From positions 43,772,001 through 43,836,000 of the forward strand of contig CM060732.1 in NCBI GenBank assembly GCA_030704615.1: DNA of 64,000 bases, written 5' to 3'. Below are positions 8,145-45,700 of this stretch, piece by piece. The position numbers and the translations under genes were made by a program. The notes under the pieces were generated by a model that saw nothing but the letters and a program-made list of their open reading frames with translations, did no database searches and was not told where the DNA came from. This DNA comes from Takakia lepidozioides (Eukaryota > Plantae > Bryophyta). Every line of letters begins with the position of its first letter. Position 1 is the first letter of the stretch.

Positions 8145-8862
8145 GTTGGAACCAGAGCGAATAGGAATGCCGACACTCTAGACAGTTTCTCTTCCTCAAT
8201 ACCACCATTCCATCTCCAACTCAAAGAAGTCAAGCTCGTCACTGGTGCATGCCAATGGGATCGTAGACGTGTCAGGCAGGTGAGGCCGGTGTAACTAAGA
8301 GCCATTTCGCCTTGCGGCTACTGCGCCCTTTTCGGGGGTGGGCCTTATAAAAGAAAAGATGCGAATCTCAGAGGGTCTTGCTCAATCGAGCAGATAGTGG
8401 GCAAATCTAGAGCTGCTCGCGACTATGTAATGACGTTCTTCATTCACTGGCTTCCTCTTGGTTGACCACTCTTGGGAGTGGACTCCCCAAACCATCTTCC
8501 AACCAGTGGGCTTTGGTGGTCTTGCAGGGGCAGCTCCTGTGGTATTTGTCCATGATACTTCTCCTTTAGGTCATGTGTTATTCCCTTTTAGAATTGACAC
8601 GACCACCTTGACTCTCCATCTCATCAACGTCAATCCTATTTCTACCCTCCATATCCCCCTGACTCCAATTGGAGTTTGCTGCTGGTCTGATTTGTTAGGT
8701 GCCTATGGAGCCCGGACTGGAACCGCGAACCAGTCCATCAGAGAAGAACGTAACCACTGAAACTTCGGAGCTGATCTTTACGGACACCTGCAGGTGACAA
8801 GATTTCAGGCAAGCTAATGGCTTTAAGAGGTTAGGGATTCGTGATGAAGAACGAGCACTGTG

Positions 8863-9590
8863 TGTCGCGGCCCTTTGCCTTGAGGGCAGGGGGTCGGGAT
8901 ACATGAGGGGCTGCCCCTGTGGTGGGGGCAGCAACAGTGATAGGTATTGGGGGGCTGAAGCACCCTTGAGTGCCCAAGGCACTCAGGGAAGCGGAGGCGC
9001 TCACTAGGTGGAGCCCCGCACACCGGGTTGCGGTGGGGGTGGCTCCACAAGGGGTGGTGGTAGCTTAGCGGGACTTAGTGGGGGTGGCATAGGACTCACC
9101 ATGGGGGCGGAGAACTCATGGTGGGAGTCGTGGGGAGTCTTGGGACTCATCACAGTCCATAGGGGCCGTGGTGAGTGGGCCAAGACTCACCGCGACTCAT
9201 CACCGGGAGTCGAGGGTTTTCGTGGTGGTTCGCCAGAAAATGGCATGGCTGGTTGTGAAACCCCCGCGGACAGCTACAGAAGTATATATAGGGAGTAGTA
9301 ACCCCGAGAACGGTGCAAGCCCGTTGGTGACCAAAAACTAGTGAGTAAGCGAGCGAGCCGGAAAGCGACCAAAGAGTGGGGAGCTGTTCCGGACTGCCAA
9401 TTACCAAAGGGAATTCCCGCTGGTTCCAAATCGGTGGAGGGTTCTTCGGGAGAACAAAGGGGGACCGTTATGCCCTGGTGAGCAGCCGAAGCTCCAAATT
9501 GGCCCGGCGGCCAGGTTGGGAGTTAGGCGCGCGCATCAAAGTGAATAACTATGACTTGAAGGGGAGCTTATCGAAGTGAGGTTCGCGACA
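8863..9590 (+). repeat. 5' LTR
   Basis: tgtcgcgg...cgcgaca; differs from the 3' LTR at about 21 of 728 positions by manual count, mostly transitions. Confidence 0.96.
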
Positions 9591-29900: not shown

Positions 29901-30738
29901 CATGCAGCTCCTAACAGATCAAGTCAGCACTGCCAGGTGAGGATCTGATTGGAATAACTATATTCACGCGGTGTTCCAAACAGTTTGCCCCTACAGAGAA
30001 ACCCTACCATAAAGCTTCAGTTTCAATGTGTCTGTTTGCACGGTGATCGTTCGTCTAAGAAATCTCCGAGTCCAGAGACATTAGCGACGAGCAAAAACGA
30101 CGAGCAAATTCTTGCGTAGTTGCATAAGCCGAACGACATCGCCAGTTTGCGTCCAGCTTGTCAAGCTTGCATATACCTGGACACTGTAAAACCCTGCCAA
30201 TTACGGGAAGAGAGAACAAGGAAGAAGCTTGAATGATTACCGAGATGCCTGCAAGAAAAGTTGCAAGATCGGACGGATCGATCGCCGCTGCAGCATCCGC
30301 CACCGACACTTTTGGCTTCTTTGCCTTCTTCGGCTTGGATTTCTTCACTTCCCCATTAACTGCCCCATTAGCTTGAGGACCAGCTCGATGATCCCCTTCC
30401 ACATCACTGTCCTCTTCCCCAGAGTGAGTTGGCTCCCCCGCAGCCAAAGCCGCCGCTAGCCTAGCCTCCCTTCGAACGCGCCGATCCTCTGCCTCACTCT
30501 CCAGGGCTTGAAAAGCCTTGGATTCACCAACAAGTCCCCCTTTCTCGGCCTCAGATTGCAGCCCCGTCGTGGCTTTCGTCTTCAATTCATTCCTCCTTTG
30601 CCTCTTCACATTGGTCACTTTCTGCCAACCGTGATTGCTAGCATTCCCGTTTCCATTCTCAGTCCCACTTCTGCTCACCGCTCCACCTCCATTCTCCTCC
30701 CCCTCCAGCACGCCGTTCCGCTCCCCCTCCATCGCCAT
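23941..30738 (-). CDS. TMEM214: Transmembrane protein 214 / DUF2359 family protein, multi-exon
   Basis: Exon 1 at 30241-30738 (HGWQKVTNVKRQR...KKPKVSVADAAAAID). Later exons include DVQLMRCADYF, VPLCYLPE, KKARPILLNG...GERLVPP, ATERFQSVYP, and a last exon with ADNTCKAI and a C-terminal TM segment. Confidence 0.85.
25069..26359 (-). mobile_element. 5'-truncated RTE-X-like LINE with an open ORF, in a TMEM214 intron
   Basis: Open frame covering the RT C-terminal half ([22 protein letters not shown]) and CPLC...HFLIHC. 14-bp TSD aactgaccttcaga at 25055-25068 and 26360-26373. Confidence 0.92.
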
Positions 30739-32924
30739 GACCACACACCAGCACAACAAAACCCTACAAAACCCTCCACTCTGCGATCGATCTCCGAGCA
30801 GCAAAAACTCTCAACCCCGCCTCACATCGACAGCACAAGAAGCACAAATCCACAACGCCCGATCACGACCACGATCCGGAGAAGAAGATGCTGTTCGGAT
30901 CGACACAGCCTCGCAGAAGAAGAGAAGAAGGAAGACGAGAAGAGACCGAGGAAAACGCGCTCCCGAGGAAACGACGGTCGACCCGTCCTCAATCACCTGG
31001 AACCCGTTCTCCGGCATGGCGGGATCCGCTGGCGCATCCGGGCGTCTACCGGCCACCGGGAGATCGCGTCGGTCACGACCGCGTGCACCGGTTGTCGCCG
31101 GTAGCATGCACTGGAGGGTTAGGTGTTTGTGGGGTTGGCAAACGTTGGACCACCGGTTTGGCACGCCTGTTACAGCATGGAACGGTTCGGATGTATTGTA
31201 AGTCACTCTTTTCCTTTTCATTTTCCTTCACCTTTACTCCACGTACTTGGACGTTTTTCTTTCTCTTTTTTTCTTTTTCTTTTTTCTTTTTTTTTTTTCT
31301 TTTTTCCAGATTTAAAATGCTAATTTCGCCCAATGAAACCATCTCCTCCACTTTTCATTAACTTTTTTAAAAAAAAAACCCTCTTCTTTACGCCATTCTT
31401 GTAAGTTGCCTCCATGTTCACTCATACATACTGATTCACACTGCGATGTATGCATGGGCCATCCTGGATATGCACTGCCATACATTGATGGCGATACATG
31501 TACATACCATCTCAAGCCATCCCATGCCATCCATACTATCAATGCCATGCCATGTTATGATGTGAATTGTTAGTAGCTATATTATAGTATTAATATGTAC
31601 ATTTAAGCATTTAAGTGAGTCATATTTCTTATAAATTTTTAGAATACGAGCAACGAGGAGACGTCAAACTATTAATTGGATATTGTGTGTATTTTGGAAA
31701 GGGGATAAACGTCGAATTTGTAATATAGTCCCACTGCAGTGGGATTTGTTTCTGATGTGGTGTTTAGGGTTATCTCGAATTAGGGTTCGAATACAACAGG
31801 GGTGTAGGCAAGTGGGGTGTTATACAAGGGTATGCCGTCAAAGTAGTGCTCTACTTAATGAGTCTGTCAGTCTTCTGCATACATTTGTGTTCATCCGCTC
31901 CAATTTGTTGTCTTCTCTCCAATTCATCACTTCTCCTCTCGAGCATAAGCATTCTCTTCGTATATCCCCTGTCGAATCGGTGTCACCGTCGTGGTACTCT
32001 CAATTTACATCTTCTCTCGGAGCTTTTGATGCTGAATGGTATTACGTGGCCAACACTCGGCGTCGAATTGTGCTCATCTCTGTATACGGTGAAGATTATG
32101 TCATTTGATTAGAACCCTATTTTGTGTTTTAGTAGTGGGGTCATTCTGGTTTTACCTTCTTGTTGCTAAGATCTCCTAGTTCATGGGATGTCATCTAGTA
32201 TAACCGGAGTTATCTGGCTGTGACACTATTCAGGTCGAAGAAAGAATTTGATCCCCGTAGTGGTTTTATCAGTGGCCCCGGTCTCACTATATTCTTGTTG
32301 GTGGGTCCCTACTGGCAAGGGCTTGGTGTGTCATGTGATGATCAAGATGCACGACATCTGAAAGAAGAGCTTTTCTTGAGTCTTGTGGAGAGTGCATTAT
32401 GTGGAGTTACCACATGACTCCGTGGCGAGGCTTGACCCGAGGTTGGGATATAAGCCTTGCGTTATTCTTCCCTAAAAGCCTTGTGGGAACAGATGGGATT
32501 TCATTTCGCTCTTGGTTCAAGGTTCTCGACTCACAGTGTCCTGGGGCCGAACATTCTCCTACAAGAGATTATGCAATTGAAAAATGATGCACTTCATGAG
32601 CACATAACGATTATGGATTTCTTACAACATGCACTCACCATACTCTCATTCTCACATGAGGATTATGAAATTATGCATTTAATAGATATTGGTAAGGTTG
32701 ATGAACTGGAGTGCTTGGAGTGGGATCAATTACTTTCGCTTTCAATCATATCCTCAAATGTCTTTGACAATTTTGCTTATTCTCATGCAGGTAAATACTC
32801 CTCCAGAGCTGCCCAAAACCCACGACCCTTGAGATCAAGGTCTACAATTCAGGGTTCAGGGTTTAAGCCTTCGTCTTTGCCCAGCTTTTCCTTGGTTGTT
32901 CCTCAGTAACAAAGTCTTGCTCAG

Positions 32925-33910: not shown

Positions 33911-35694
33911 CTAATACAAAACGTCCCGTTTGATGTATTTTTAAGGAATATTTCCTCATTTGACATTTGGTGCAGATTGGAGCTGCAAGTGGACACTACA
34001 CCTAACCTTTGGCATTATTATAACCCCTGAACGCCCCACGCCCTTCTCAATGTAGTCAAACTTTCGATCTATAGCTCAATTTCCGGTCTTTGAATTTGAG
34101 AAATTATTTTTTTAATATTTTTAGATGAACCTATACGCTTACTATAAATCTTGAATTTTTCAGAATTGTATCATAAAAATTGGAATATTATGATGTTCTT
34201 AAACCTAAAGTTCCCAAGCGACCTGAATCGGCTCACTTTGAATTTGTAGTTCGACCTAATTTTTGCAGATCTAATCTGATGGGGCCCATTCCTGAAGCTT
34301 TAATGACAAAGGATTGATGCAAAAAACAAAACTAAGAAAAAACAAAAGCTGCCACGTACAAAAAATATCTTAGATCTCTCATTTACGTTTTGGGCCTGAA
34401 AAGGGCTTGTTGACCGCTGACGTGGCAGTAAACAAGCCCAAAACAGATTGCACTCCAAAAGGCCACTTTTTTGGAAAAAAAAAAAATAGCAATTTGGAAA
34501 AACAGCACTTCACCTTGGTGGTGTGTGAGCATTACATACACAACATCCACCATTGGCTTTAAGAATTTGTAGAAAAAAAAAAAGTACTTCATTTGGAGGC
34601 ACCATTTTCTCTGTCAATTTGAGATTTCCAACCCCCATGTAATTGCATTGCATAGAACCATAGGTGAAAAAATCAATTGGAAACTGCAATTTAGGGGTCA
34701 TAGCCACTCCACTATTGATTTGGAAAACGGTGGGTCTTGGGGCAAGCAAAATGGATAAAGCTGGTTTTGATTTGGTTTCTTTCTCCACTTTTATTTGGAC
34801 ATTGATATTTGAGGTCCGGGCCAAACGGTATAATCCAGGGTTGGGCGGTTTTGGGATTATAATCAGTGTTGGGCGGTTCTTGCCTTTGTGAAGGAACCTT
34901 CGGTCTGGTTCCACAAATTTTTGAAGAAGAGACAGTTCCGGATCCGGATCCGGTTATTTTTATTAAGGCGGTTCCGGTCCGGTTCAGGTTCTGAATTTTA
35001 ACATGGGGGCGGTTCCGGTTAACGGTTAGTTGCTGGAAAAAAAAAACCACCGGTTCCGGTTAGGTTCCGGTTCTTTTTAAAAATATATTAAATTCTTTTA
35101 ATTTTTTATTCTTCTGGAAAATTAGATGAACTGATCTGATTGATTCATACTGAATATTCAGAATTTTTAACTAAAACCAGGGAATTTTAGTAGTAAAACA
35201 GAAGTTAATAAACTTATATGTTTTTTGTGATTGTCTTTTATGGTATATATAACAAGTAAATTACGCATGGTCTCCATTAAAAATGGAAAACCAGAGGATT
35301 TTATAAGTTTTCGTACGGTGTAGCAAAGAACAACTAAAAAACAACTAACTACATAAGGATCTTAATTCAATATACAAATAAATTAAACATGTGTGTAATT
35401 CTATGGTTACCGTTTATGGTGCAGCAAAAGCACAACTAAAAAAAACTACATAAATTGTGTTTTTTTGGATGATGCTTTGTCGATATAGCATACAACAAAC
35501 TAAGTACACGGATTTGTCACTGAAATTTTCAATAAAAATGGACAAATAAACAAACTCCAATCAAAGGAGTATAGTGTTAATATGTGAACAATAATTTGTC
35601 TCTAAGATAAATCATTCTACTCTTAAAGAGGTTTGCCTCTGCAATCAAGTCCTCATTCTCATCTAAGATGACTTTTCCCTATCCAAAAACTCTT

Positions 35695-37925
35695 TCATGG
35701 AAGTACTATAAAGCAACCAACTCTAGCATCATTTGGCCAATTCTTGACTACACTCACAAGCATATCAAGGTTTTCAATATTTAATCTGCACCGTCTCAAG
35801 CTTGTTATGACACCTGCAATACTAAAAACCCTCTCAGCTTCAATCTGAGATCCAACTATGCCCAAGATTAGCCATGCCAAAAATCCCACATACGGAAGAG
35901 AGACTCGTATTCTTTCCACCATTCAAAGGAGCCACGCACTCACCCTCAATTTTCTTCGTCCTTCTGAAATGTGATTGTGATAGTTGTTCTCTCACTACTG
36001 TCAATGTCATGTCTTCATTGTGGTTATGCACACCAAATAAGGACATCTCGTCCATGTGGAAGTGGGCTGTGATTGGGCCGGAGTATCCGGATGTAAGACC
36101 TTGAAACACTTTACAAAAAGAGGTTTTAACACCATGCTATTATATTGGGACACAATATGCAAAGCACGATCTTGTGATACCAATGACAACCCCTTGTAAC
36201 GTGGGTCAAGCATAAGCGCGAGCATATTGTGAACTTTGCGCGATTGAAACCCTTCCAAAAAAGAAAAAGAAATGGTTCCAAGACATATACCACTTCTCGA
36301 GCCATCCGCCATTCCAACGATGTCAACTCTGTTGAGAAATCCCCCATGCAATGATCAATAGTTGCAGCCCTGGGCGCACTACTTCTTCGCATGCGAATTG
36401 TGTGGCAATGGCTGCATGCATTAGAGCATCGGACAACAGCCAAAATCCCCCAGATTGATTCATAATGCACTCATAAACCACATGCCCTAGAACTATAGAA
36501 ATTGATTGGGCAATGGCCCACACTTGTGGACTTGGTATGCGAGACTGCAGTGCCAATGAGGTTTGCCTAGAGTAACAAGTGATTATGGCTTGCCTAAATT
36601 CCAAAGTCTCTTGGAAGATGATCACCTTGGAAGCAAACTGTGTCTTCACCGGAGTCTTCAATTTGTGGGGATGAATGTCGCTGTCCACACATGCCTTTGC
36701 TCATTCTTGTCTCTCTTTGCCACTTTTTTTTGTCCAAGTAATGGTTTTTTGCAACTCTAATGGGGCATTTTTTATAGAAACTGATCTCATATCTACGCAT
36801 ACTTTTGCATCATTTGTTGCATACTGGCAACACTTGGACATTGCATGTCCAAAACAGCTACCCACAAATGGAGAATCCAACCCCAACACGCACATGAGAC
36901 CACCGAATTCAAAGCATTGGTCAAAATTGGCCAAGTTACCTCCCTCATCTTTGACGTAAGCAATAATGCGAGTATTGAAGCCATACTTCACAAGAAGATT
37001 GTTGACTTGATGTGTCATGGCAGCCCCAGATGAGTCAGGTGTCTCAAACATGCCAAGAGTCACATGACATTGCTCCCACTGTTCATTAATATAGTGCGCT
37101 ATGATGACAAAAGTGTCAGTTCCCCTCTTGACATCCACAAATCAAAACTCACAGAGCAAGTAGCACAACTCTGAAGAGATGGGGACATGTAGCGCTCTTT
37201 CGTCTTCTCTGCCAAGATTGGAATGGCTCATTCACAAATGTCCGTCGAGAAGGGAAAACAATCCAAGGATTTTGCCTCAACACCATCCTTCTTAGCCAAG
37301 GGGATTCTACCAAAGACAGTGGAACCAAACTCCTTTGCAATGAACAAGACTAAATCCTATTGAACTGCTTCTGTTGATCATCACATTTTGGTTGTATGGA
37401 GTGGAGCTCCCAAAAAAAAAAGTTATGTTTCCAGGAGTGGGGCCGAGCCTCTTTTTGGCTGGCCTACGGGCCTTCTCATGTCCTTCATTTTCCCTCTCAA
37501 TCCACCTACGCAAAACAATGTCATGTTCTTGATCCACATGCTTTCGAAGGGCAGAGATACCATTGGTTTTATTATAGGTCACAATGCCCTTCTTGCTTGC
37601 AGGAGTGACACCAACATGATGACATAGAACACACCTCATTTGTTGTGGATTTGTTATGTCAACTCGAGCAGAGTCTTTTGTTGCATAGAATGCCCATGTC
37701 GAAGCAATGCGATTGTGGGGCTTCCAAAAATCCCATTGTTTTTCAAGTATTGGGAGCTGCGCCTCCACATCCAACACCTGTGTGTGATGGCGAAACTGTG
37801 GAAGATGACATTGCAGCCGAGGCTTGAGGGAACTGATGTAAATGAGGCGCATGCATGATGAGCATCCTCCGCAACATGGCACTCCACCAAAGCTCTCTCA
37901 TTATCAACATTGATGTCAGGAACAA
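35695..37925 (-). pseudogene. hAT transposase, frameshifted
   Basis: BED zinc finger (W..F...CVLC...LRKHV..EH), SFDLWMS catalytic Asp motif near 37140, CFGH, LDPRYK and dimerisation motif SQIEAERVFSIAG. Confidence 0.92.
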
Positions 37926-38239
37926 CTTCCCTTTCTAGTTCATCGAAAATATTGGGTTCTATGACATAAAAAAATTGTGGAACAACTCATGTGTAAGAAC
38001 AATGCAAACAAAGAATCCAAAAGGCATTTAATAATTGTGCACAACTCATATATTTACAAAGTTTGGGAATGGTATATGGCTGGCCAAAACGAAAGTATGG
38101 GGAGAGACACCGCACTGCTCAATTTATTATTTCATATTGAGCTGAATGTTACATGCATGACCTACATTTAGATCTAAGTTATTTTTTTTTATCTAGTACA
38201 TGTACATTTACATTTTCAAATTACAAAAACTACATAGCA

Positions 38240-40070
38240 AGTTGGGGGTGGACCAATCTTATGCTTCAGTGGTCAGCTTGGCTACTTCATGCCTTGGGAA
38301 ATGATCTGCAATGCCCCCACCACATATAAATAAATCAGTCCTTGTTGTACCACAACATGAAGAGTTATAACTAAAAATTATGAAGCTTTAAAGTGGGGTG
38401 ATTGTCCACAAGAGGTAGGGGCTGGCTGTCAAGCCTTCTTGATATTTGTGCTCCCCTTTTCGAGTTCAAACTTTCACTATGAGAGGAGGAGCAAATCATC
38501 CCTCTGTTGTACCACACATTGGAAAAAATAAAATAAAAAACTAAATTATTAAAGGGTGGGGGCTTACCATAGGATGAGGGGGCTGGTTAGCGGGCTCTAA
38601 ACTCGCACTCCTCCTTCTTGTGTGTGATCTACATAGCAACGGAGTAGGGGCTGATCAGCCCTTTGCTATGCCAATTTTCTGGGGAAAAAAAAATATGCAA
38701 CATTGAATTAGGGGCATGCTTACATGTGGTGGAACGGGGGCTGGTTGGCAAGCCTCCCTACTTGCCATCTTTCCCTCCCATGCACGATCTACAATAGCAA
38801 AAGAGCAAGGGGCTAATCAGCTCCTCTTATATCACAAACTTAAAATAATTAAGAAAATAAAGAACAATGAAGGGGAAATACACGCGGGTAATGGGGGCTG
38901 GTTGGCTGGTCAAGAGGCCTCCTATTCCTGCTCCCTTCCCGAGTGCAACATATCACTACGAGGAAGGGCGAATCAGCCTTTTGTTGTACCACACATTGGA
39001 AAGAATAACATTAAAAAACTAAGCTAAAGGGTGGGGGCTTACTACAAGATGAGAGGGGCTGGTTGACGTGCTTTTTTACTTGCACTGGACGTCCTTCTTG
39101 TGTGTGATCTGCATTAGCAACGGCTAATCAGCCCTTGCTATACCAATTTTATGGGAAAAAAAAATGAAGGGGGATGCTTACATGTGCGGTGCAAGAGGGG
39201 CTGGTTGGCCAGCCTTCCTACTTGTCTTCTTTTCCCTCTCATGCTCGATCAGCCGTAGCACAAGAGCAATGGGCTAATCAGCCCCTCTTTTAACAAAAAT
39301 TTAAACAACTAAAAAAATAAAGCTCAATGAAAGGGAGTTACAAGCGGGTAATGGGGGCTGGTTGGCAGGTCCCTCCCTGCTTTGGGCTCCCTCCCTCTGA
39401 TGCAGAATCTGCCATAACAGAAGCCAAAGGGGCTATCTTATCAACCCCCAATTGTATCAAGAATTTAAAAAAATTTAAAGAAAGGGACGATACTTACCAG
39501 TGGGTAATGTGGGCTGGTTGGCGGGGCCCTCCTTGCTTGTGCTCCCTCCAATGTAAAATCTACCATAGTGGAGCAAGGGGCTATCAACCCCTTGGTATAT
39601 CATCAAAGAAAACAGGAAAAAATAAAATAAAAAATGATGATCAATGATTACCATGGACCAAGGGGGCTGGTTGCAGGTGGGGCCCTCCTTACTCGTCCTC
39701 CCTACCTCCTCCTGCACCACATGCCATAGCAGAAAAGGAGGAGGCTGATTTAGCTTTATGGTGAACTAAAGCTAAAAACAATAAAATAACCAAAAGTGGT
39801 GGATGCTTACCAACAAGGGGCTGGTTGACGACGGGGCTGGTTGCGCGGGCCTTCCTGCTGGCACTTCCTCCCTCCAATGCGCCACTTACCACAATACAAG
39901 AGCATGGGGCCCATTAGCTCCGCTGAACCAAAAAATTAAAAAAAAACAAGAACATGGTGGATGCTCACCAACAACAAGCGACGGCTGGTTGGCGGGGCCC
40001 TCTTGCTCACACTCCCTCCCTTTGTGTCCACCACCTGCCACAGCAGCAGAAGAGAGATCAGCCCCCTCTT
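38240..40070. repeat. Degenerate tandem array of about 11-12 monomers of ~157 bp inside the hAT element
   Basis: Core ggggctggttgg recurs near 38417, 38579, 38737, 38894, 39055, 39196, 39353, 39511, 39662, 39817 and 39983, separated by A-rich tracts. Confidence 0.9.
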
Positions 40071-41340
40071 GTGCGATAAACTGAGAAGAAAATAAACAAA
40101 CAACACATTAAATCAATCAACCTAAGAGGGAAAGAGAATGGAGATGGAGATGAAATGAGAGCGAGAGAGAAATCAAACAAATAAAGTAGGAGATGGAGAC
40201 ACGGAACACGAACCTTACCTGGACTGGAGTAGCGAGCAAGATGTATGCGAGAGAGAGCGAGCTGGATGAGTTGTAGAGACACTTAGGGCTACAGCCCACG
40301 GGTGGAACTGGAACCGGAACCGCTTTAGAGTCCCCAAACCCCGGTTCCCACACATGTGGTCGTAGCTAGAACCAGTGGTTCCGGTTCCACACAACCCCAA
40401 TTTCCGGTTCCGGTTCTGCACAGGCGGGTCCGGTTCCGGTCCGGTTCCACATAACCGGAACAGGAACCGGTGGTTACCCGGGGGCAGGCGGGTAACCGCC
40501 CAACACTGGTTATAATCTCACAATTTCCACGGTGGACTTGGCTCATTTTGTGGTATGTCATGCATAAATGAGCTGGGCCCACTGCTATAAGGCTGGAATC
40601 TATGGATGATTTTTGGTAGGTTTCTAGGGGCAATTTACTGCAGTTGGGTACCCAAAATTGGTAAAAAGTCAAAAAAGGGCTTGGGAACTTAAGGGTTAAG
40701 CTTAATGTTTTCAAAAATCCATATCAATTATATGTATCCAAAATTTATGAAATTCTTACCTTGGGTGTAAATCACAATGAAAAACACTTTAGTCTATTTC
40801 AAAGTCAAAAAAACTTTTTTAATTGGAAAAAATCGATAGAAAAACTATGCTAAAGAACAAATTGGCTCTTGACCCATTGAATTGGTAATGGCTATAAAAG
40901 ATTCAATAATTGGTATTTTGATGAATCATAAAGTGGAATAGAAGCTAGACTTGATTATCTTTACTTTGTTAGTTCAACTCAAATGCAAAAAAGATTGTTT
41001 TCAAAGTGAAAACTAAGTTTGACCAGAGAGGAGCCACTCGAGGGCCTCTTGGGCGTTCAGGGGATAACCCGGGGTTGGACTCCAAATGAAGTTCGTTGAA
41101 GCATCTTTTTACCTTAATTGTTTTTACAGCAAAAATCCCATCTTGATTTTATATTTCTAGCAACCAGCTTTTTCCACTACATACACCATAGAAATACATT
41201 TTACATCGAATATTTGTATATATTGAATTAATATTTTATGATATATTTTTATGATATATTTTATTTTCAATATATGATCTAATTAAAGAACATTATGAAG
41301 CAACCGTTAGGTGACCAAGTAAGGTTACGGTTAGATAGAA

Positions 41341-42793: not shown

Positions 42794-45700
42794 TCATTGA
42801 AACTGGTAAGTTGCAAAGCTATGACCGGCGCGACCTTCATTTGTTGCTTTCAGATCAAGCTTTTGAAAGGGACTGCAAGAGACATCACCATACAGCAACC
42901 TCAGTACTTCCAGTGTATCGCAATATTCATCACCTATACATATATGCTTAGACCTGGAATTCTTCAGCTTGATAATTTGGAATTTGAAGAATTTCAGAAG
43001 CAGCAGGACTCACATAGAGCTAAGATGCACCCTGTATGTAAGGATTGTTCCTTCATCAAAAGTTACAAGAATGAGTCATTGACCCAGCATCATTCTATAA
43101 TTGCTTGCACTTTCCAAAACTGCCAGTCTGTTTTTGTCCCTGATTTAGCAAGCTCTAGTACCTTATCTCAGTGAATCTAGCTCGAACATGTGCACAGTTC
43201 TATTGATGTTAAATTACCCACCCCTTTCACATGGACAAGGTACCAACACACCATTTTGTATATGCAACAGGATATGTTTTTGAAGAGATGGAACAGGAAA
43301 TTCACACAGATACTTGCAGAAATAGGCATACGAGAGAAGGCAAGATAGGTGGTTCACTACAGAGAAGAAGTTAGTCAAGTGAACCTGCTGTTTGGGTCAA
43401 AGTAGAATCCATGGACTGAGCCATCACTGCGGGAAAAGCAGACATAATAAAAGCCCGCAATAGTCAAGCCACAGTCGGTGCCAACATTCACAAAAAACTT
43501 CTCCTTCCATCTCTGTGCCCACAGCACATTCATCCAGCAACCAGACTTGTAGAGTGAAGAAAGGACGATCAGGAATCCAAGACCTTTCCACTGGCTACAG
43601 TACACAAAGTGAACAATGGCCAGTTAGACCACATTGCAAGTCATCTTATGTTTCGCCTTGAGGGCAGGGGGTCGGGACACGAAATGAGCCTCCAAAATAT
43701 GACTCGATCGGAAGGCAAATTAAGAGCATAAATATTGATTAATCCCATGATGTTGTTTCCAGAGCAGGAGTGAAGGAATCCGCATTGAGACCTTCTTTGG
43801 ACCCAAGTATAGGTATCACGAAAGTCGAGAGCAAGAGCAGCAGAGATGAGGATAGTAGTCCCTCCCCTGGAATCCACCACCAAACGGTTTCACCAAGCCA
43901 AGTATGAAGGCCATAGTAACCGCCCAACATAGGAAATCGTACGATCGTCCAGCTTATGCTCCTGAAGGAAGAGGAATTAAAATTATTTAGGGCCGAAACG
44001 GCCTTATGGGGCAACAGGAGATAGTGGGAACCATGATAGCAAGTCTTTGGGTACCATCCACTCACCATGAACATGAAGGGATAATTTGCAAGATCCAGTG
44101 ACCGGCCACCATCCCTCTGCACTTCCTCCTGCCCAAGCAAATTCAACTCTTCATGTGCCCAGTCCTTAAATGTAATAAGTGAAACAAAAATTTGTTGTTG
44201 ATTAGAAGAAAACGTTTACCAGAGATGACAGCTAAGGCCAGATGCCCAGAATCCCAGCTCCTATCTCGTCACTAAATTTCCCAGCAAGGATTAAACCTAC
44301 TGACAGACAGCAGCAAGATGACATTATGGACAGTCAAAAAATTAGAGAAAATGGATGCCTGAGGACAGTGGAGTAAGTCATTGTACCTTGAGGTCTAGGA
44401 AAGATGCGAACTTTGACCAATGCTTCACATCTGTGTCTTTCCTGAACAATTAACATGTGGACAACTGCATGATGAGGAAAGGAAAGTGTGCTGTGAACCC
44501 CACAAGTGTCTGGATTCTATTTGGACTCTGACAAATCATTTGTATACACATACTCAAACGGAGAAATAAACTTGCCAATCCTAGTCAGTAGTCTATCATG
44601 ATTCCTCCATTCTGCACCAGGTTTTCATCTGTGATCCACAACTACTGGAGAAAAAACACTCACAGGTCAAACATCTGATTTATGAGTGGAGGAAAGTAAA
44701 ACTGGGAGAAGATCCCACTTCAAAGTGCCTACAGAGAGTACAACAATCAGAGCCCTCTCCAGTTCCAAACATACAGCACATGCACTTCTATGTAAAGGCA
44801 ACCAAAGCCTTTCCACCGGAGAGAAGAGACCGACAGCCAAAGCTCACTTCCACACAGATGACAGGTTGACAAGAATAAAAGGAATTAAATATTGGAACTC
44901 ACGACGCATCCCATTGGCCTGTGAAGAAGGTATAGTTTTTATTGTCCACAATTTCCCCCTCCCAGAATGTCACCACCTGCCATCCAGTTCAGATCTCAGA
45001 CTTCAGATACGCCTGTCAGTGCAGGAAAGATGCCCACTCTCCTCCAAAGTGTGTGACTGCAATCTGTTCCTTAATGAAGATATCATTCAGGCAGTTCCTG
45101 GACTGGTTCCAGGACTTTCTCAACCTGCTACGATCTAGGACTGCCTAGATACTCGTCAGTGGCAAGAGAGAATCATCTCAACACAGAAAAGTCACATGAG
45201 CAACAGAAAAGAAAATTTGAAATTGAATTAGCAGCCCCGGTCTGTAAGTTCGTGATGTACATATGGCAGCCAGAAAGTAGAGCACCAAACAACAAAACAC
45301 AGAACATTGCACAAAGATACCAGTAAGACAAAGAGGGTTGGTAAGAGGGCTAGAAGAAGATAGAGAGAGGCAAAGCATGCACAGACAGGGGTCTCGGCGG
45401 AGGGCACATTGAGAGCCTCCATGCTGCCACACAGATAGCCACGCTGCATGTCACATCCTTGTAGCCGCACATTAACTTTCCATGCCTCATCTTTTTGCAA
45501 ATTTGACACATTCTGTGTTCCAGCAAATGCCTGCATTGGACATAACAGTTGAGCCGTATTTACACAGCTGTGCATATTTTAACCATACATAACCGTACAG
45601 ATAGCATATTCACTAGAACTGTTTGTAAATCTTAGGATTCTTACAGTTTGTGACTTGAAGCTTCGTATACTAGACTAAAGTTAGTATGACCTGAAAGTGA

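Follow-up and report, generated by a model that had tools for sequence, protein, structure and literature searches.

The moss Takakia lepidozioides carries, in a 64,000-nucleotide stretch of contig CM060732.1 (assembly GCA_030704615.1, positions 43,772,001 to 43,836,000; hereafter the 64-kb window, in whose own coordinates all positions are given), a 5.6-kb hAT transposable element that occupies 34864-40508 (5645 letters) and encodes a transposase, now decayed, on the minus strand. On the transposase sense strand, in the interval between this gene and the 5′ subterminal repeats upstream of it, lies a tandem array of 12 related units, each of which combines a short GC-rich block resembling an exon with a U-rich block resembling a spliceosomal intron. 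The array probably represents a 5′ leader with multiple introns that belongs to a family of autonomous hAT transposons; splicing of its units is supported by a transcript-like contig from a related copy, in which two junctions were observed at positions that had been predicted from the genomic sequence.

Organization of the array

Cutting the array at a conserved anchor and aligning the pieces with MAFFT yielded 12 tandem units of 142-164 bp each, with a mean pairwise identity of 0.56 (range 0.37-0.83) among the 11 canonical units. The anchor, the 10-mer AACCAGCCCC, occurs nine times between 38579 and 39842, always on the minus strand, whereas 0.22 occurrences would be expected by chance in the window, and no occurrence was found in the window outside the array. 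The tandem chain of mini-exons and introns that an earlier note on this DNA had described from the sequence, in the sense orientation of the transposase of a hAT element, is thus real.

A direct-repeat search recovered more than 20 repeat families within the array, with spacings of 150-165 bp and 460-477 bp, while Tandem Repeats Finder reported nothing there because the copies are too diverged. Three pairs of units stand out by similarity (39363/38903, 39206/38746, and 39064/38588), and the last six units are accordingly a duplicated trimer (B-C-A-B-C-A), which explains the periodicity of approximately 470 bp. The exon-like blocks are 60-74 nt long with a GC content of 0.57 and a T content of 0.15, and the intron-like blocks are 73-101 nt long, apart from the first, which measures 184 nt, with a GC content of 0.39 and a T content of 0.41. 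An Rfam scan of 37900-40520 at E values up to 1 returned a single chance-level match to a bacterial riboswitch and no snoRNA or miRNA family, and a scan for bacterial-type promoters, which is irrelevant to this DNA, found nothing.

The mini-exons could in principle be coding and provide a repetitive N-terminal extension of the transposase, and a four-exon chain (40034 to 39498) does stay open when the phases are followed by hand. This explanation is nevertheless highly improbable: exon length is not divisible by three, the conserved anchor falls in different frames from unit to unit, the chain runs into a stop spanning a junction, and in several exons just one frame is open. The coding test is a weak one in a copy that has decayed; the coding interpretation was rejected on the lack of a shared frame, which the earlier description had also noted, and on the stops encountered when the phases are followed.

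Splice signals and conservation of the units

The borders between the two kinds of block carry the signals of plant U2-type GT-AG introns. A donor GT is present in 11 of the 12 units, 10 of which read GT[AG]A (Table 1); the donor of the eleventh unit, at 38881, is GTATTT, and the last unit has GACAAT in the donor place and is dead in this respect. YAG acceptors lie in register in seven units (40035, 39560, 39409, 39109, 38789, 38629, and 38306). In the other five, the nearest AG is displaced from the acceptor column by +1 (39885), +8 (39712), +6 (39244), or -6 (38956 and 38477). The shifted acceptor, YRTAG/TGA, is common to both A-type units, which indicates that this change is older than the duplication of the trimer. 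A branch-like CTGAT or CTAAT is located approximately 26 nt upstream of the AG, within the 18-40 nt expected of a CTRAY element before a plant acceptor, and the U-rich interior of each intron is set against GC-richer exons, as is also typical of plant introns; the pyrimidine content of the last 25 intron nucleotides is only 0.44-0.76. All ten donors and all seven acceptors listed beforehand were therefore found, with one-base corrections of the first donor (from 40217 to 40218) and of the last acceptor (from 38305 to 38306), but the description of the remaining acceptors as one base off in three units did not hold for all of them, given the displacements above.

Conservation was expressed as the share of units with the commonest base in each column, and windows of four columns were ranked (n = 151). 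The anchor AACCAGCCCC, which is exonic, reaches 0.82-1.0 per column and is the best conserved block of the unit. The donor GTAA, at 0.91 in each column, ranks 8 of the 151 windows, and as ranks 1-7 all fall within the anchor, it is the second best block. The GAT of CTGAT follows with 0.82, 1, and 1. The proposed test of whether the splice columns are better conserved than their neighbors was thereby passed for the donor and the branch-like motif, and more weakly for the acceptor, with 0.91 for the A column and 0.73 for the G column.

Besides the splice signals, each unit contains three CAGCCCC half-sites, contributed by the anchor and by the intronic palindrome GGGGCTGATYAGCCCC. RNA folding predicted pairing between the anchor and the intron motif for some units and self-folding of the palindrome for others, with inconsistent z-scores of +0.3 to -2.6. 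The motif GGGGCTGATCAGCCCC was grouped with AACCAGCCCC as a candidate protein-binding motif. The exonic AACCAGCCCC and the intronic GGGGCTGATYAGCCCC palindrome may represent additional bound or regulatory sites, acting either as splicing enhancers or at the level of DNA.

These motifs raise the question of whether the array is primarily a bank of protein-binding sites in the DNA, such as an enhancer, a landing pad for the transposase or a host factor, or a region controlling methylation, comparable to the GC-rich leader of En/Spm, with splicing as a side effect. The conservation of AACCAGCCCC and of the palindrome, and the three half-sites per unit, are what such a bank would lead one to expect. 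However, the clear transposase-type subterminal motif of the element is a different one (GGAACCGG) and sits outside the array, a binding-site bank needs neither the contrast between GC-rich and U-rich blocks nor the order GTAAG...CTGAT...YAG, and the spliced contig described below shows RNA processing; a bank of this kind is thus an unlikely primary explanation.

The repeat structure itself can be read in a further way, as the neutral expansion of a minisatellite, in which unequal exchange or slippage multiplied an intron-bearing stretch of the leader, the splicing was inherited, and the number of introns brings no benefit. Unequal exchange typically produces higher-order duplications such as that of the three-unit block, with its 460-477 bp spacings; the arrays found in the same place in related elements are unrelated; and several units have weakened or shifted signals, with one exon skipped in the contig. 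On the other side, the donor GTAA has been held at 0.91 despite a unit identity of 56%, which points to long maintenance under constraint, and neutral expansion is a possible account, though not the favored one. Both the neutral and the binding-site explanations are live, and both are compatible with splicing.

RNA evidence for splicing

Two small contig runs with the same species label, X1 and X2, whose RNA nature is guessed, were aligned to the whole element at 80% likeness. The share of the element's words was 0.00 in both, no contig was at least 99% alike, and no contig in either run fell on the intron parts of the array at this likeness. The lack of a near-identical contig and of any contig on the introns indicates that the runs do not contain the locus as DNA, and fits RNA libraries in which the dead copy is silent.

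One contig of run X2 (record 14), with a length of 156 nt and a depth of 2.9, joins 39043 to 38788 and 38724 to 38628. Its letters 1-35 end at 39043 and are contiguous with letters 36-99, which lie on 38788-38725; three further letters follow, and letters 103-156 lie on 38628-38575. The three extra letters (CAT on the minus strand) close the exon just as ...CAT does at the locus, and the second skip therefore measures 95-96 nt. The two removed pieces begin and end at donors (39042 and 38723) and acceptors (38789 and 38629) that had been named in advance. The prediction of about ten spliced leader introns is in this way borne out at two junctions, in a related copy and in a run guessed to be RNA, while the exon of one unit is absent from the product: the first removed piece, of 254 nt, contains the unit exon 38955-38882, whose acceptor at the locus is of the shifted A type and whose donor is the weak GTATTT. 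This exon was either skipped or missing in the copy from which the contig derives.

Alternatively, the joined contig might reflect variation in DNA or an error of assembly, with the GT/AG pattern arising by coincidence in a conserved repeat. Its short length and low depth and the guessed type of its run leave room for such a reading, which is nevertheless very unlikely for several reasons. Canonical GT..AG ends bound both removed pieces, on the same strand and at the predicted positions. Neither the 254-nt nor the 95-96-nt skip is a multiple of the unit of approximately 157 bp, and being out of register with it, the skips are not explained by unequal exchange between units. No 30-mer is common to the junction flanks that could have misled a de Bruijn assembler, and no unspliced contig of the array is present in the same run.

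Other contigs concern the remainder of the element. A joint in X1 from 37170 to 37328 was considered as a coding intron and rejected, the skipped part being conserved hAT coding sequence (PLSLVESPWLRRMV...PSRRT) and the gap being taken as an unaligned diverged stretch. Abundant contigs (depth 119 in X2 and 581 in X1) cover 40274-40508, that is, the 5′ terminal inverted repeat and subterminal region, and depart from its sequence at 40274 or 40429, and short derivatives of the element's end appear to lie within well-expressed transcripts.

The hAT element and its surroundings

The element has the anatomy of the hAT superfamily (Table 1). Its ends are formed by the short terminal inverted repeat (TIR) CAGTGTTGGGCGGTT, which is perfect over 15 bp at both ends, and it is flanked by an 8-bp target-site duplication (TSD) whose two copies, ATTATAAT and GTTATAAT, are equal at seven of eight positions.

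Table 1. Coordinates of the features of the element, its leader array, and the spliced segments (positions in the window).
Feature	Position	Strand	Basis
TSD, left copy ATTATAAT	34856..34863	.	read directly in the sequence
TIR CAGTGTTGGGCGGTT, transposase 3′ end	34864..34878	+	15/15 complementary to 40494-40508
3′ subterminal region with GGAACCGG / CCGGTTCC motifs	34879..35095	.	sequence reading; motif class common to the other end
Decayed hAT transposase	35698..37882	-	open reading frame pieces and protein matches; several frameshifts and stops
Tandem array, 12 exon-plus-intron units, from first donor G (40218) to last acceptor G (38306)	38306..40218	-	
Mini-exon, covered from 38628 to 38575	38568..38628	-	X2 record 14
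95-nt intron, GTAAGC...TGTAG	38629..38723	-	X2 joint 38628 to 38725; acceptor AG 38630-38629, donor GT 38723-38722
65-nt mini-exon, splice joints on both sides	38724..38788	-	X2 record 14
Removed piece of 254 nt, GTAAGC...TTGTAG	38789..39042	-	X2 joint 38788 to 39043; CT..AC on the plus strand, GT..AG on the minus strand
Mini-exon, 3′ 35 nt (39077-39043) covered by the X2 contig	39043..39108	-	X2 record 14
Donor GTAAGC	38567	-	
Donor GTAAGC	38723	-	
Donor GTAAGC	39042	-	
Donor GTAAGC	39181	-	
Donor GTAACT	39341	-	
Donor GTAAGT	39497	-	
Donor GTAATC	39651	-	
Donor GTAAGC	39810	-	
Donor GTGAGC	39968	-	
Donor GTAAGG	40218	-	
Putative first (leader) exon, 3′ end CAG/GTAAGG	40219..40300	-	inferred from the sequence
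5′ subterminal region with repeated GGAACCGG / CCGGTTCC motifs	40301..40493	.	sequence reading
TIR, transposase 5′ end	40494..40508	-	pairs with 34864-34878
TSD, right copy GTTATAAT	40509..40516	.	read directly in the sequence

The transposase is broken by frameshifts and stops, and the copy is therefore dead. An open reading frame (ORF) at 37307-37882 on the minus strand contains a BED-like finger and gave no match in the protein searches. The core piece (36701-37138, minus strand) corresponds to the RNase-H-like core of hAT transposases and matches hAT-type proteins with E values of 1e-29 to 5e-43, including P0004 (995 aa, E 1e-29), which carries PF05699 (Dimer_Tnp_hAT), and P0151-P0153 (E 5e-43 to 5e-40), of which P0153 has PF27041; the closest relative in the protein databases is at most 56% identical to the core piece. 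A putative remnant of the C-terminal dimerization region at 35698-35844 matches PF05699 weakly (E 0.036, 14.3 bits, below the cut-off of 21.4), and a frameshift separates it from the upstream ORF, which ends just before it in a different frame.

The AT-rich stretch from 38210 to 37960 on the minus strand leads from the last array exon to the region of the transposase start; with GTAAAT near 38211 and TGTCATAG ending at 37961, it may constitute an additional leader intron outside the repeat series. At 34836-34850, 28 bp outside the left end and in the same orientation, a TIR-like sequence with one mismatch (CAGGGTTGGGCGGTT) is found, which an older insertion or a duplication of the end could have left behind; another TIR-like copy, with two mismatches, lies at 43918-43932 on the minus strand. 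At approximately 3.5 kb from the element, the GC-rich region 30055-31361 (GC 0.58-0.59) contains long overlapping ORFs on both strands and is probably the first exon of a host gene.

Related elements and known systems

Arrays in the same location are found in relatives of the element. A metagenome contig (L003) carries a related hAT element with 56% identity in the core piece, an identical 15-bp TIR (L003:13411-13425), and subterminal motifs of the GGAACC type; its leader array (L003:7720-9250, 1.5 kb) consists of alternating pyrimidine-rich units of 53 and 46 nt and is not homologous to the array studied here. A prokaryote-style gene call lies on the opposite strand of that contig, at 8776-9039. 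In a second locus (L006), a related hAT piece with 55% identity is accompanied by an array of 34-nt units (L006:2000-2720) approximately 2 kb upstream of the transposase fragment, while a chromosome of GCA_014871385.1 (L001), which we take to be a moss assembly, has no array. Among these sequences, the placement of an array between the element's 5′ end and its transposase recurs in the clade, with the exon-intron build being particular to the family studied. A scan of metagenomes for two anchors 130-160 nt apart yielded 40 loci, all of them unrelated proline-rich or other repeats, and none had a blastn match to the array.

The element shares much with the plant hAT transposons Ac and Tam3, namely, short TIRs, an 8-bp TSD, subterminal repeats at both ends, and a long untranslated leader before a transposase with BED-finger and RNase-H-like parts and, in the studied element, a putative remnant of the hAT-dimerization part, as well as introns that are spliced by the host. 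The long leader of Ac is not known to contain introns, and the few introns of Ac are unique and lie in the coding part; in the studied element, by contrast, about twelve related exon-intron units in tandem make up the leader. The GC-rich repetitive leader of En/Spm (DCR) and the minisatellites of plant transposons are alike in placing a repetitive, partly GC-rich region between the element end and the transposase start, but these arrays are not known to consist of intron-bearing units.

Intron gain by tandem genomic duplication has been documented, in which new introns arise from a duplicated gene segment and are then spliced (PMC3265369; PMC4974935). In that model, the duplication of an exonic AGGT segment turns former exon sequence into one intron of a coding gene (PMC3265369; PMC4974935), whereas here, a whole exon-plus-intron unit has been copied about twelve times within the non-coding leader of a transposon. 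Each unit has its own donor, branch, acceptor, U-rich intron, and exon, and the introns are not duplicated exon sequence. Introners, which are transposable elements that generate introns, likewise link a DNA transposon with spliceosomal introns of a common sequence (PMC9860276). Introner copies are dispersed and non-autonomous, each becoming an intron of a host gene upon insertion, while the introns studied here stand in tandem within the element's own transcript; dispersed near-identical intron copies were not seen in the window, where the anchor is confined to the array. The array combines known kinds of structure, these being a hAT element, an internal transposon array, and intron duplication, and full-text literature searches found no published description of a transposon leader built as a tandem chain of related introns.

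Proposed origin and function of the leader

According to the favored explanation, the array would have started from a single unit, in which a short, GC-rich exon of the leader was combined with a U-rich U2-type GT-AG intron of approximately 90 nt; tandem amplification, partly in blocks of three units, would have placed about twelve copies in the interval from the 5′ subterminal repeats to the transposase start codon. The host spliceosome would cut the U-rich segments from the transposase-sense transcript and join the mini-exons of approximately 65 nt, and where the signals of a unit are weakened, its exon would be skipped and an intron of approximately 254 nt removed. The leader would be continuous with the transposase mRNA, and the donors may have been retained by selection in the active lineage, since a leader with unspliced units would contain U-rich, AUG-bearing sequence.

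Several findings weigh against this explanation. The RNA support consists of a single 156-nt contig of depth 2.9 from a run of guessed type and from a related copy rather than from this locus; two of about ten junctions were seen, with one exon skipped. The contig spans array exons alone, and no read links them with the transposase ORF. The top-conserved block of the unit (AACCAGCCCC) is exonic rather than a splice signal, and the conservation can therefore not be credited to splicing alone, something besides the splice signals being constrained. An ATG is present in five mini-exons and would burden the translation of the downstream ORF. The arrays of L003 and L006, finally, have neither the alternation of GC-rich and U-rich blocks nor the order GTAAG...YAG, showing that the tendency to form arrays exists without introns.

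What the many introns might do for the element can be proposed from work on plant gene silencing. Splicing near the 5′ end of a transcript has been shown to raise expression and to lower the levels of small interfering RNA (siRNA) (Christie et al. 2011, as reviewed in PMC7488869), and introns lower RDR6-dependent silencing in plants (review PMC7488869). This suppression has been demonstrated for transgenes with one or a few introns, and for the studied array it is a proposal. Speculatively, many splicing events at the 5′ end could raise expression or make the transcript appear "host-like" to the RDR6 silencing pathway. In its strongest form, the proposal holds that the active hAT lineage keeps a leader of exon-intron modules under selection, and that 8-10 junctions within approximately 2 kb of the cap, together with the AACCAGCCCC motif, would mark the mRNA as "host-like", raising its expression or shielding it from RDR6 and siRNA; the leader would then be both an intron-dosage counter-defence and a generator of new related introns. 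This extension is doubtful as it stands, and is put forward tentatively.

Significance

For the annotation of genomes, the array illustrates that such repeats in transposons are masked as simple repeats and their splicing is overlooked. If the chain were confirmed across the family, it would allow a test of whether tandem duplication multiplies whole introns: approximately ten related, recently amplified leader introns would be a rare case of intron birth by duplication in many steps, in which the decay of signals unit by unit and the skipping of exons are visible. A family-wide chain would also be a natural object in which to test whether the protection from RNA silencing that introns confer in plants depends on their dose, a question on which previous work has relied on transgenes with one or a few introns.

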